Part shown: positions 3,963 to 15,120 of the stretch, in pieces
Layout of the letters: every line of letters begins with the position of its first letter
Position numbering within the stretch: position 1 is the stretch's first letter
Source of the DNA: Octopus sinensis
Taxonomy: Eukaryota
Direction: 5' to 3'
NCBI RefSeq assembly: GCF_006345805.1
Contig: NW_021825662.1
Coordinates: forward strand, 1 to 15,324
Length of the DNA stretch: 15,324 bases
The notes under the pieces: model-generated
What the model was told of the DNA's origin: nothing
Database searches by the model: none
Seen by the model: only the letters and a program-made list of their open reading frames with translations
Program-made: the position numbers and the translations under genes

Positions 3963-4361
3963 TTAATGCCACCTAAGCCCGGCTGTTTTCTCTAGGAACC
4001 GACGATACTGCTGTATTTAATCCCAGGAGGCCACCTCCTCCAGCTGGTTATGCAGTGCGCTCTCTTATCTAGATTGTCTCGATTTGTTTGCTTCTTGCAA
4101 GATCAGTGACTGTGTGTCACTTATATTTTTTTATATGTTGCGTGCTGGAGTGAACTATTATTTTGTCTAGCGGACGAGTATCCATCACCAAAGATGACCA
4201 TAAGAAGGTCGAAACTACACGTTTGATGGTCCCAGGGCTAAAATAGTAGGGAGTTCTTCCCCCCGCTTCTAATATGTGTATCGAGTGCAGAGCGCACTGC
4301 ATAAGCAGCTGAAGACAGTATCGTCGGTTCCTAGGAAACATCCGTGTTTAGGTGGCGTTAA
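3963..4361. repeat. Fold-back with inverted arms around a ~225-bp spacer
   Basis: 3963-3976 vs 4348-4361 match 13/14, 3992-4010 vs 4316-4334 match 19/19, and 4041-4063 vs 4289-4311 match 22/23. A third partial arm copy lies at 5853-5883. Confidence 0.8.
4182..4229 (+). ncRNA. Type I hammerhead ribozyme fossil with a mutated core
   Basis: Stem I CCAUCA/UGAUGG. Core is CCAAAGA instead of CUGAAGA, followed by an extra U. Stem II GACC-auaagaa-GGUC, then GAAA, stem III AC-uacac-GU, and U17 at 4223. Confidence 0.6.
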
Positions 4362-5114
4362 ACAACACTTGTTTACTGCTTTCATCGCTTTTAGAGATTT
4401 TCTTGAGTAGCTAATTTGCTTGTTATGTGTGTGTGTGTGTGCGTACACGCGCATACACACACACACACATACATTTAAATACATATATAAATAAATATAG
4501 ATGTGTGTATGTATTTGTAAAAGATGTATTCAGTTTCTAAGTAACTCGATTTGAACGGTTAAGTTACTGTTAAACTCTTTGATAATTTCATAAAACCAAT
4601 CGTTAATCTAGTTTTAATATATTTTATACAGCATTGAATAATAATTTTGCTTGGGTTAATATAACTAATACAACTTACTAAATGTAGGAAGCTTTTAGAT
4701 TACAGATAAGTTAGTGTTATCAAATCCATATATGACAAAGCTAAGTAGGCATATGAAGGGGGAAAAGATAACAAGAGGGAATAGTATATGTGAGGGAGAG
4801 AGAGAGAGAGAGGAAGGGGTGAGGGAGAGTAGGGAAATTTGATATTAAAATGAAGATCAATAGGACAACAGTGATATGAATGAAGAGAAAGAAAATAAAG
4901 ATAATTAGTTTCATAATGAAGTTGTAAAGTAGATAATGAATTTATGTAATCTTGAGGAATTCGTATTCCAAATGTAAGAACCCCCCCCCCCATTGTCTCC
5001 CTTTAGTTTCTTTCTCCCTCCTCTCCATAATTACAACAATACTCGTAACGCGAACCCGTTTATTTGCTATTATATATATATATATATATATATATATATA
5101 TATATATATATATA

Positions 5115-5321
5115 GTCAATCCAATCAAGAACAAGCAAGAAAAAACAACAACGCGAGGACGTGGAACAAGTATTGTGTTATTGGACACTCAGGAAAGGAA
5201 AGAAAAGAAAGAGGAATTCACGTTTCGAGCGGAGCTCTTCATCAGAAATATGGAAAAAGTCCAAAGAAGGGAAGACGGAGAAAGAAAATCGCCAACGATA
5301 CACAAGAGGTCATACATTGAA
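5115..5321 (-). mobile_element. ~210-bp hammerhead-bearing short element in (TA)n, tandem copy 1
   Basis: Nearly identical to 5422-5626 and colinear with 14910-15120; (TA)n lies on both sides. Confidence 0.8.
5215..5249 (-). ncRNA. Minimal type I hammerhead motif (G at the cleavage position)
   Basis: Minus strand AUUU-CUGAUGA-A-GAGC-ucc-GCUC-GAA-ACGU-G-AAUU. The core is intact, N17 is G (5219), and stem I is weak. Confidence 0.6.
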
Positions 5322-5421
5322 TATATATGTATATAATATATATATATTATATATATTATATATATATATATATATATATATATATATATATATTATATAT
5401 ATATATATATATATATATATA

Positions 5422-5626
5422 GTCAATCCAATCAAGACAAGCAAGAAAAAACAACAACGCGAGGACGTGGAACAAGTATTGTGTTATTGGACACTCAGGA
5501 AAGGAAAGAAAGAAAGAGGAATTCACGTTTCGAGCGGAGCTCTTCATCAGAAATATAGAAAAGTCCAAAGAAGGGAAGACGGAGAAAGAAAATCGCCAAC
5601 GATACACAAGAAAGGTCATACATTGA
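5422..5626 (-). mobile_element. ~210-bp hammerhead-bearing short element in (TA)n, tandem copy 2
   Basis: Direct repeat of 5115-5321 with a period of ~305-307 bp. Confidence 0.8.
5520..5554 (-). ncRNA. Minimal type I hammerhead motif (G at the cleavage position)
   Basis: Identical to 5215-5249, 305 nt away; N17 is at 5524. Confidence 0.6.
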
Positions 5627-6099
5627 ATATATATGTATATAATATATATATATATATAATATATATATATATATATATATATATATATATATATATATAT
5701 ATATAGATATATATGTATGTATTGGGGTAGGGTTAGCAACATTGTTGTCATGTGGTAAGTAAAAGGAAAGGAAAATAGTGTGTCGAACAGAAAGTACAAA
5801 AATAACAACTATACTAACGATAGAAAACGTTATACGTCATTTACGGGAATAAAAATAGCAGTATCGTCGGTTCCTGGAGAAATCCGTCGCCATTCCTGAT
5901 TATAAACAAGCATTAAATGTTGATAAGAAATGGGACTTGGCTGTATGATAGAATAATACTAGAGCACGACATTTGTTAGTTTCACCCCAAGCAAGCAAAC
6001 CAGTACCAGTCTGAAAGAACTTCTCTGGCGAATAGTATTTAAATTTTTCATGAGTTATTTGATGTTGCTAACCAAACTTTTTTTGCAAGAGGCGTATTT

Positions 6100-6430
6100 A
6101 TGACTGGACGGCTACAAAGTTCTCATCACAACCACATTGTTGTAGGGGTTCGATCCTACTGCGTGACACCTTGAGTAATAACTCCAGGGCGACCAATATA
6201 TATATATTTTTTTGTGAATTTGTTTATGGGAAACTATAGCATCCCATAGCATCAGGTCGGGCCTTTTAAGTGATATTGGATGGCAGGAAATTGTATCGAA
6301 GCCCATCAAATGAGTTGTAAAATCAAAAAGGTACAGCCTTGTCACACATTGTGCTATGCTGAATTTCCCTGGGAATTGCGTTAAGGATGTACACACGTGT
6401 CTGTGGAGTACTCAGCCACTTGCACATTAA
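6100..6430 (+). mobile_element. Patchwork of degenerate SINE fragments
   Basis: CAACCACAT...GGGTTCGATCCTACTGCGTGACACCTTGAGTAA (B-box plus body shared with 1539-1770), then CTATAGC...CAGGTCGG...GGAAATTGTATCGAAGCCC, then a different SINE-like 3' body ending CTCAGCCACTTGCACATTAA. Confidence 0.55.
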
Positions 6431-13984: not shown

Positions 13985-14085
13985 TATATATACGTAGTGT
14001 TTGTGTGTGTGTGTATGTATGTATGTATGTATGTATGTATGTATGTATGTATGTATGTATGTATGTATGTATGTATGTATGTAGT
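13985..14085. repeat. (TG)n/(TATG)n microsatellite
   Basis: Direct repeats abutting the right mariner TSD. Confidence 0.95.
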
Positions 14086-14242
14086 GATTGTGAATGTATG
14101 TATTCAGCCGCTTCCTCAGACAAGTCACATTAGTCTGACTTCACTGTAGAATTGGCAACACGCCACAAGTTCAAAGAAATAACTGCACCCTGCGTTTGTA
14201 CTGAGTACTCCTGCTCCGGATCATCGTTGCTCAACAACGGAT

Positions 14243-14567
14243 GTATATATACATATACATACATACATAAACATCATACATACATACATACATACATACA
14301 TACATACATACATACATACATACAGACATACATACATATATTAGATATATATACATATATATACATATATATATTATTAATATAATATATATACATTATT
14401 ATATATATATATATATATATACATACATATATATATCTACATACACATATATATATACATATAATATATATATATATATATGTATATATATATTATTTAT
14501 ACTATATTATATATATATATAGATAATATATATATTATATATATATATAATATATATATATATATAG
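14243..14567. repeat. (TACA)n/(TA)n microsatellite
   Basis: Direct repeats. Confidence 0.95.
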
Positions 14568-14787
14568 TTCAAAACATTCCTGTCACAACCTGGGACCTGA
14601 AGACTTCTTAAATGCAAGAAAGTATAGTAGTCCCTTAATATTTGATATTAATATTTCATCTATTCAATAAGACAATGAATACTTCTTTTCATTTTACAAT
14701 ATATACTATTTATATTATATATTCTGTATTCTACTTTAATATTATAATAATATAAATAAAACATAAAAAACAGAGTTGGAATTCCTT

Positions 14788-14909
14788 TGAATAATATATA
14801 TATATATATATATATATATATATTATATAGATATATATATATATATATATATATATATATATATAGATATATATATATATATATATATATATATATATAT
14901 ATATATATA
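14788..14909. repeat. (TA)n microsatellite
   Basis: Direct repeats. Confidence 0.95.
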
Positions 14910-15120
14910 ATTGACGCGTGTGTACCGTTGGCGATTTTTTTTCCTCGCTCCGTCTTCTCCCTTCTCTGGATCTTTCCTTTTCCTATGTTTCTGACGAAGA
15001 GCTCCGCTCGAAACGTAAAACCCTCCTTTTCCCCTTCCCTCCTGAGCGTCCAATAATACTATATTTGTTCCACGTCCTCGCGTTATGTTTTCTCTTGGTG
15101 TTTTCATGTTTGGATTAACT
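14910..15120 (+). mobile_element. ~210-bp hammerhead-bearing short element in (TA)n, a diverged relative of 5115-5321 and 5422-5626
   Basis: Shared blocks CGTTGGCGATTTT, TTTCTGANGAAGAGCTCCGCTCGAAACGT, CCTGAG.GTCCAATAA, TTGTTCCACGTCCTCGCGTT and TGGATT.ACT; (TA)n lies on both sides. Confidence 0.85.
14987..15021 (+). ncRNA. Minimal type I hammerhead ribozyme with an intact core
   Basis: GUUU-CUGACGA-A-GAGC-ucc-GCUC-GAA-ACGU-A-AAAC. Stem I is GUUU/AAAC, stem II is 4 bp, stem III is the ACGU palindrome, and predicted cleavage is after GUA (15017). Confidence 0.8.

Follow-up and report, generated by a model that had tools for sequence, protein, structure and literature searches.

Minimal Type I Hammerhead Motifs of the Penelope-Like Element Kind Among Transposable-Element Remnants in an Octopus sinensis Contig

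In this work, we examined a 15,324-nt stretch of Octopus sinensis DNA (NCBI RefSeq assembly GCF_006345805.1, contig NW_021825662.1, positions 1 to 15,324 of the forward strand; hereafter the window), for which an earlier note had described six minimal hammerhead ribozyme motifs (here m1 to m6). The window is very probably a collection of transposable-element remains in which a single known RNA module occurs repeatedly, namely, the minimal type I hammerhead (min-HHR) of Penelope-like elements (PLEs). Five of the six sites, m2 to m6, are real min-HHR copies of the PLE kind. Because only one of the copies is fully canonical, we regard the material as ordinary decayed mobile-element debris. The sites fall into four sequence families and represent at most five independent sites, because m2 and m3 are the product of one recent tandem duplication. 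The motif class is known and was correctly recognized, here in new sequence families; it is not a new variant. No published hammerhead catalogue for this kind of genome, that of a cephalopod, was found in the literature.

Results and Discussion

Recovery of the Hammerhead Motifs Against Background

The window was searched with a PLE-type descriptor that specifies a 4-bp stem I with no more than one mismatch, CUGANGA followed by a single extra base, a stem II of 4 bp or longer, GAA, and a palindromic, loopless A-N-N′-U, with any base at position 17 and at most one core mismatch. Five loci were found, versus a mean of 0.01 per shuffle among 200 dinucleotide-preserving shuffles. The best shuffle had one locus, and none of the 200 reached two, let alone the observed five. 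For m2 to m6, the match rate therefore lies far above that of shuffled sequence, the comparison by which the earlier note had proposed to judge its motifs.

A covariance model, R1, was trained on seven hammerheads from other loci only, two of them metagenomic (L002 and L003) and two beside PLE endonuclease genes (L004 and L005), and was run on the window with filters off. Because of this training set, the test is less self-referential than the descriptor. R1 found exactly m2 to m6, namely, m6 (36.5 bits, E 5.8e-9), m4 (33.1 bits, E 6.3e-8), m2 (28.0 bits, E 2.2e-6), m3 (27.7 bits, E 2.7e-6), and m5 (24.5 bits, E 2.5e-5), and the following match came only at E 0.87.

These results bear on the suggestion that the matches arose by chance from a short, degenerate pattern in repetitive, AT-rich DNA. 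The motifs are indeed short, five of the six deviate from the consensus, and Rfam reports nothing. However, no shuffle contained even two loci, R1 sets five sites apart from the background by more than four orders of magnitude in E-value, and the position of the motif after PLE endonuclease open reading frames (ORFs) is fixed in three loci. We consider chance extremely improbable overall; it is already refuted for m2 to m6 and is possible for m1, which R1 did not match at E ≤ 10 and for which a tailored descriptor, in a post hoc test, gave 0.003 per shuffle.

Sequence and Structure of the Six Sites

All six sequences were found where the earlier note had placed them, and the stems that it quoted do pair (GAGC/GCUC, GACC/GGUC, and GGCUG/CAGCC; CCAUCA/UGAUGG, GACAC/GUGUU, and GUUU/AAAC). 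For five of them, its further claim that CUGANGA...GAAAC...GU-H is present throughout is wrong. Only m6 (14987-15021, +; GUUU-CUGACGA-A-GAGC-ucc-GCUC-GAA-ACGU-A-AAAC) is fully canonical and accepted by a strict descriptor. The duplicated m2 and m3 (5215-5249 and 5520-5554, both −; AUUU-CUGAUGA-A-GAGC-ucc-GCUC-GAA-ACGU-G-AAUU) have an intact 13-nt core, a G at position 17, and a weak stem I that pairs at three of the four positions closest to the core (AUUU/AAUU). One core substitution, A6 to U, is present in m4 (8683-8722, +; UCUUUU-CUGUGGA-A-GAGC-guag-GCUC-GAA-ACGU-U-AAAGAC), in which stem I is UUUU/AAAG. Likewise, m5 (10395-10440, +; GACAC-CUGAAGA-A-GGCUG(G)-...-(U)CAGCC-AAA-ACGU-U-GUGUU) has a long stem II and a single change, G12 to A. 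The most divergent site is m1 (4182-4229, +; CCAUCA-CCAAAGA-U-GACC-auaagaa-GGUC-GAA-ACUACACGU-U-UGAUGG), with U4 to C, G5 to A, and a non-palindromic stem III.

The catalytic core (C3-U4-G5-A6-N7-G8-A9...G12-A13-A14) is thus intact in m2, m3, and m6, and acceptance by the descriptor needed one core mismatch for m4, one for m5, and two for m1. As a full motif, m1 does not hold: CCAAAGA replaces CUGANGA, and the site fails both the core test and R1. At position 17, where H (A, C, or U) is expected, we found A in m6, U in m1, m4, and m5, and G in m2 and m3. The earlier note was right that one extra base lies between A9 and G10.1 in every site (six of six parses; A in five and U in m1), and the same base is present in nine of ten descriptor-found hammerheads at other loci. 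The G10.1-C11.1 pair closes helix II at all six sites. As had also been reported, five sites (m2 to m6) have a loopless ACGU directly after GAA and no helix III hairpin.

The stems were further examined in an alignment to R1 of 15 hammerheads (14 distinct sequences; alignment A5). In this partly circular test, standard pairs fill 92.7% of the pair cells, compared with 63% after column shuffling and at most 51% with partners slid, and seven of the eight pairs have changes on both sides. G10.1-C11.1 is invariant and is kept in 14 of 14 distinct sequences. With the circularity noted, these values are supportive of the covariation-like signal claimed for the stems. A smaller but cleaner signal comes from two related units embedded in (TA)n, named c and a and described below: their flanks are 78% identical, whereas CUGANGA...GAAACGU is identical at 25 of 26 positions, with the sole difference at the free position N7.

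Comparison With Published PLE Hammerheads

Metazoan PLE min-HHRs are characterized by an unpaired nucleotide that separates position 9 from 10.1, a conserved G10.1-C11.1, a palindromic 15.2-16.2, and the lack of loop 3 (PMC4209133). Their helix I is short (4-5 bp), loop 1 is ill-defined, and helix II is sometimes long (Cervera and de la Pena, 2014; PMC4209133). Their genomic copies number in the thousands and are heterogeneous and mostly solitary, with inverted pairs 100-700 bp apart; cleavage is weak and occurs only as dimers, and the motifs are located in pseudo-long terminal repeats (pLTRs) (PMC4209133; also PMC6765202). Min-HHRs are also treated by Lunse, Weinberg, and Breaker (2016/17, as cited in PMC6765202).

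The window motifs agree with this description in their type I topology, short open helix I (4-5 bp), unpaired base after A9, and G10.1-C11.1 pair. They likewise lack loop 3, and their palindromic ACGU would imply activity as dimers. The sense-strand 3′/pLTR location, the many solitary mutated copies, and the occurrence of inverted and tandem pairs are shared as well. Helix II has 4 bp or, in m5, is long (6-7 bp) as in schistosome families. We found no structural difference between the two groups; what sets the window copies apart is that they are specific sequence families. The descriptor, R1, and the PLE linkage agree with the earlier assignment of these motifs to minimal type I hammerheads of the PLE kind. 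The extra base, the loopless ACGU, and the dimer requirement, which had been presented as special, are the already published definition of PLE min-HHRs (PMC4209133).

An extra nucleotide (A10) between A9 and G10.1 is also tolerated in the hammerhead of chrysanthemum chlorotic mottle viroid (De la Pena and Flores, 2001, as cited in PMC4209133 and PMC6155905). That motif differs in being of type III, with complete helices whose loops interact, and in belonging to a circular RNA that is infectious; the likeness is confined to that single position.

A Truncated PLE and Related Loci

The copy m4 is located in the 3′ fragment of a 5′-truncated PLE (~1.1 kb; 7686-8811, +). This fragment consists of a GIY-YIG remnant (7686-7946), a ~650-nt CT/CA-rich 3′ untranslated region (UTR), m4, and a ~90-nt tail that reaches (TACA)n. 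The ORF at 7680-7946 (+) encodes C-x-NN-VIY-x9-C-x3-YIGQTGRRLADRFTEH..., with an endonuclease remnant of 87 aa (7686-7946), and judged by its sequence it is a predicted PLE-type GIY-YIG endonuclease. Its homologs (P0001 to P0008) include a UniRef entry from Octopus bimaculoides named "GIY-YIG domain-containing protein" (59% identity), and for homolog P0002 the PF01541 score is just under the Pfam threshold. The copy is 5′-truncated and without a reverse transcriptase (RT), because the endonuclease starts abruptly inside a piggyBac-like remnant. The window thus contains no autonomous PLE of the kind inferred in the earlier note, only this ~1.1-kb fragment. The interrupted piggyBac-like transposase remnant (PF13843; 6600-7680) contains internal stops, is cut at ~7686 by the PLE fragment, and is not resumed afterwards.

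On the sense strand, m4 lies ~740 nt past the endonuclease stop; the insertion, whose 3′ end is ~90 nt beyond m4, is directly followed by (TACA)n. The distance from the stop is this large because of the long, low-complexity UTR. The CT-/CA-rich stretch itself covers ~650 nt (7990-8640), and the Logan contig L001 (800-1184) is likewise CA-rich downstream of its ORF. From this similarity to the related L001, the composition of the UTR looks like a family trait of this PLE lineage.

Two PLE ORF loci from other assemblies, L004 and L005, have a min-HHR of the same architecture on the same strand, ~100 nt after the endonuclease stop compared with ~740 nt in the window. Their stems are unlike those of the window, with GGGC/GCUC and GGCA/UGCC as stem II and a different stem I. 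In L005, homolog P0005 is preceded by ORFs with KIHK...RPIVS, AMGS, and YMDD, which we take to be motifs of a PLE-type RT. Scans of these RT ORFs against Pfam and NCBIfam, and a PDB sequence search with the first of them (7780-8787), returned nothing useful, so their PLE identity is based on motif inspection. The association of m4 with a PLE is supported, since the motif is downstream of a GIY-YIG remnant on the sense strand and the arrangement in L004 and L005 is alike. A sense-strand 3′ location beside a PLE endonuclease is accordingly seen for m4, L004, and L005, and extends to the (TA)n units by their common tail. For m1 and m5 a PLE link was not supported, as the homology of their flanks to the PLE tail, and to each other, was not significant.

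Inverted min-HHR pairs separated by 0.5-1.5 kb were observed in further invertebrate contigs, namely, in L005 (16856-16891, −, and 18415-18450, +) and in L006 (12395-12434, −, and 12891-12930, +). In the L006 pair, the extra base is U and the palindrome has six bases (ACAUGU). These pairs match the published inverted arrangements of PLEs. Five short Logan contigs with related endonuclease ORFs (L001 and L008 to L011) end before a hammerhead is reached, and none of the window's short interspersed nuclear elements (SINEs) or hammerhead-bearing units was found in L004 to L007, the loci reached through endonuclease and mariner homologs.

(TA)n-Embedded Units

Three of the hammerheads are carried by units embedded in (TA)n. 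Unit c (~215 bp; 14911-15125, +) contains m6 and is flanked by (TA)n at each end. Units a and b (5109-5320 and 5416-5624, both −) are arranged head-to-tail with a period of ~305 nt and contain m2 and m3. Units a and b differ by one substitution in ~210 nt plus four indel positions (99.5% identical); c has 79% identity to a over ~210 nt and belongs to the same family. Unit c is colinear with the PLE fragment over a stretch that starts ~25 nt ahead of the hammerhead and runs to the 3′ terminus, and its tail aligns to the PLE tail with a score of 42, compared with 22.7 ± 4.5 for shuffled sequence. The upstream ~75 nt of unit c did not align with the UTR of the PLE fragment. Units c and a/b share their 5′ start, TGTGTAYCGTTGGCG. 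The (TA)n microsatellite is a documented preferred target of PLEs, and a hammerhead near the 3′ end is likewise on record (PMC8557442).

The duplication of hammerhead unit and (TA)n spacer in a/b (5109-5624) could reflect either tandem insertion in the manner of PLEs or a DNA duplication mediated by the microsatellite. A scan of viral contigs for the (TA)n-family hammerhead gave no match, and a scan of metagenomes gave only two unrelated min-HHRs, L002 and L003. The weak R1 match at E 0.87 corresponds to 14589-14637 (+; GGGAC-CUGAAGA-C-UUCUU/AAGAA...GUCCC), which has the 5′ half-core and both stems and no GAAA, and was rejected as a hammerhead. The unit that holds it is ~220 bp long and is flanked by two (TA)n tracts, as are the real units of the (TA)n family.

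A tRNA-Like Head Beside m5

A candidate composite SINE-like unit (10205-10738, +) consists of an A box (TGGCGTAGTGG, ~10240), a B box (AGTTCGATTCC, ~10283), (AAT)n, m5, and a tail. The two box strings were read from the sequence and are ~43 nt apart, and m5 is 90 nt downstream of them. The 534-bp block that includes the boxes and m5 is bracketed by a 12-nt direct repeat, AATTAGTTAATT (10193-10204 and 10739-10750). This repeat may be a target-site duplication; it sits in TTAA-rich low-complexity DNA. ARAGORN called no tRNA in the tRNA-like head, and the Rfam tRNA model had no match there at E ≤ 10. No second copy of the unit was found in the window or in L001 to L007. L004 (957-997) contains a hammerhead related to m5 in which CUGAAGAAGGCUGG is identical, stem II has 7 bp, and G12 is intact. 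The proposed tRNA-SINE with a hammerhead is at most a candidate, as neither tRNA detector recognizes the head and no second copy that would unite head and hammerhead was found.

Other SINE-like repeats are located at 1540-1770, 2990-3250, 8830-9150 (−), and 9560-9770 (−), with (TACA)n, (ACGC)n, or (GATAC)n tails. Two of them have tRNA-like heads that are clearer than the one beside m5.

Discrete Elements or Truncated PLE Tails

The (TA)n units and the tRNA-box unit can be read in two ways, which we rate about equally. They may be discrete non-autonomous elements, namely, min-HHR retrozymes or Sm-alpha-like SINEs mobilized in trans by PLEs, which is the sense of the "network" in the earlier note; we put this at somewhat less than an even chance. 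The independent units c and a/b start alike and are both ~215 bp, their first ~75 nt cannot be aligned with the UTR of the PLE fragment, and a/b form a head-to-tail dimer with 305-nt spacing, as in retrozymes. The m5 unit has its bracketing direct repeat, and its A and B boxes are oriented with the hammerhead with no intervening T4 run. There are also precedents, as animal retrozymes have been derived from PLE pLTRs (Li, Clavereau, and Pollet, 2026, bioRxiv 10.64898/2026.07.22.740005), and schistosome SINE-like elements combine a promoter with a hammerhead (PMC6765202). However, the (TA)n family has just two independent copies and the m5 unit one, the nearly identical a/b dimer is possibly a DNA-level duplication within a microsatellite, and both of its hammerheads carry G17. 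Moreover, the tRNA-like head fails ARAGORN and Rfam, the low-complexity setting of the direct repeat weakens its value, and the differing 5′ parts may simply be the UTR of another PLE family.

Alternatively, the short units may be severely 5′-truncated PLE insertions or solo pseudo-LTR remnants, with the m5 fragment a chance insertion into an unrelated SINE's (AAT)n tail, a reading that in our estimate falls just short of even odds. Most animal min-HHRs are single motifs that have been ascribed to truncated PLEs (PMC4209133), m4 is demonstrably inside one such PLE, and the homology between the (TA)n unit and the PLE is limited to the 3′-terminal module. PLEs prefer microsatellites (PMC8557442), and every hammerhead-bearing unit in the window adjoins (TA)n, (TACA)n, (AAT)n, or TG-rich repeats; as read from the sequence, microsatellite tails are also present at the ends of other SINEs in the window. 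On the other hand, truncation does not readily account for two independent (TA)n units with an identical 5′ boundary, at ~85 nt the tRNA-like head by itself would make an uncommonly short SINE, and the 12-nt direct repeat spans both head and hammerhead. The claim that (TA)n passengers share an RNA module with the PLE stands for the hammerhead and the ~90-nt 3′ tail, and its further part, that they are discrete elements, is about as likely as the alternative on the two independent copies.

Two known systems are relevant here. The non-LTR retrozymes of animals (Cervera and de la Pena, 2020, PMC7229834; bioRxiv 10.64898/2026.07.22.740005) are short AT-rich repeats of 170-400 bp with one type I hammerhead each, like the window units, and their head-to-tail dimers and relationship to PLE termini resemble units a/b. 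Their hammerheads differ in being canonical type I, in which loop 1 is closed, the loops make contact, and helix III is a small hairpin, and they are expressed as circular RNA, whereas the window has min-HHRs and a single dimer, both copies of which have G17. Thus, the 305-nt tandem dimer is present, and the canonical retrozyme hammerhead is not, since the motif is minimal and without loop 1 or a helix III hairpin. The Sm-alpha/Sj-alpha SINE-like elements of schistosomes (Ferbeyre et al., 1998; Laha et al., 2000; both as described in PMC6765202) have an RNA polymerase III (pol III)-type promoter followed by a hammerhead on the same strand in ~0.3-0.5 kb of non-coding sequence, like the m5 unit. 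According to that account, they differ in having a helix III hairpin and in being abundant and experimentally active, while the m5 unit is a single copy with G12 changed to A, a head rejected by tRNA detectors, and an unproven unity of head and hammerhead.

A more specific proposal is that this genome holds non-autonomous, PLE-dependent min-HHR retrozymes, that is, a ~215-bp (TA)n unit that forms dimers and a ~530-bp composite of a pol III head and a PLE hammerhead, the cephalopod counterpart of Sm-alpha. We consider this doubtful. If true, it would extend the proposed link between PLEs and retrozymes from canonical vertebrate hammerheads to minimal molluscan ones. The "network" idea agrees with the existing literature.

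Catalytic Competence and Possible Role

A6, G5, and a non-G at position 17 are classical requirements known from hammerhead mutagenesis. In addition, G12 acts as general base in the hammerhead (PMC6155905). Because one of these requirements is broken in five of the six sites, those are unlikely to cleave as they stand, and m6 alone could plausibly still do so. The copies other than m6 appear to be fossils of once-active masters rather than working ribozymes, because they carry substitutions at catalysis-essential positions or at the cleavage site. Minimum free energy and cofold predictions for m6 favored an alternative GUUUC/GAAAC pairing and were uninformative for monomers and dimers alike.

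From the literature, the motif would reside in the sense-strand 3′-terminal/pseudo-LTR region of an active PLE. Having no helix III of its own, it would pair through the palindromic A15.1-C15.2-G16.2-U16.1 with a second copy on a tandem transcript, and the resulting dimeric ribozyme would cut the PLE precursor RNA after position 17. In the window, m4 is the copy left in a 5′-truncated PLE; m2, m3, and m6 lie in ~215-bp units derived from, or co-evolving with, such a PLE tail; m5 stands beside tRNA-like pol III boxes; and m1 may be a relic in an inverted-repeat element.

Several points weigh against reading these sites as PLE ribozymes or their descendants. No Rfam hammerhead or tRNA family was found by cmscan in the whole window, at E ≤ 10 or at the gathering threshold, nor in slices of 131-371 nt around m1, m4, m5, and m6 at E ≤ 10. 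A helix III hairpin is central to the hammerhead models of Rfam. Since the window motifs lack this hairpin, the silence of Rfam probably follows from its absence; the result shows only that Rfam does not detect the motif, not that the motif is absent. It still means that curated-model support for these hammerheads is lacking. The endonuclease fragment in the window is below Pfam significance for GIY-YIG. The circularity of the covariation test arises because the training set was chosen by a pairing descriptor and A5 was fitted to the model. For ancestral catalytic intactness, we infer it from one intact copy and relatives rather than from a family consensus. Finally, hammerhead mutants of an Anolis PLE inserted normally in vitro (PMC11167929).

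The biological role of PLE hammerheads is unsettled, and the conserved block could have been kept for another reason, as an element in the 3′ tail that the PLE RT recognizes or uses structurally, or as a selfish hitch-hiker on PLEs, so that "ribozyme" would describe a fold and not a function. In agreement with this, PLE min-HHRs show poor cleavage in vitro, even when dimeric (PMC4209133), no RNA-seq ends were found at the cleavage site in the study of the hammerhead-dead Anolis elements (PMC11167929), and Naiad PLEs thrive without hammerheads, the authors of that study raising the possibility that hammerheads parasitize PLEs (PMC8557442). In the window, the very recent a/b duplication nonetheless carries G17. 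Yet the conserved positions are exactly the catalytic core, and the stems covary in the way that a hammerhead demands; fully active hammerheads are carried by fungal, plant, and protist PLEs (PMC4209133), and C3/G8 rescue mutants act as a ribozyme would (PMC11167929). We therefore hold a role other than cleavage to be improbable, and retain the view of the motifs as copies of a self-cleaving PLE module.

The m1 Element and Other Repeats

The inverted-repeat element that holds m1 (3947-4377) has arms at ~3947-4063 and ~4289-4377, and a third copy of the arm end is located at 5845-5887. PLEs typically have truncated copies in inverted arrangements (PMC8557442); apart from this arrangement, nothing ties the element to PLEs. 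By its sequence, m1 may be a heavily mutated hammerhead-like relic.

Two further repeats were observed in the window. A near-perfect hairpin (2231-2375) with arms of ~60 nt resembles a foldback or miniature inverted-repeat transposable element, and it gave sub-threshold matches to many microRNA-precursor models (57 bits versus a gathering threshold of 119). A mariner copy (12701-13986) has terminal inverted repeats and a broken ORF, with ~90% DNA identity to L006 (9498-10794) and L007 (1422-2724). Either the genomes are related or mariner has spread between lineages; these two ENA contigs share no SINEs with the window.

Implications

These observations have little import beyond annotation. 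For the annotation of such genomes, they indicate that PLE min-HHRs undetected by Rfam can be recognized by careful reading without other aids, and that a small covariance model for loopless PLE hammerheads, built from seven sequences, recovers them cleanly and could fill this gap. They also indicate that PLE min-HHRs can be locally dense in this genome, with five or six in 15 kb. If the (TA)n units or the tRNA-box composite are discrete multi-copy families, they would provide material on whether hammerheads serve PLEs or ride as passengers that seed non-autonomous derivatives.

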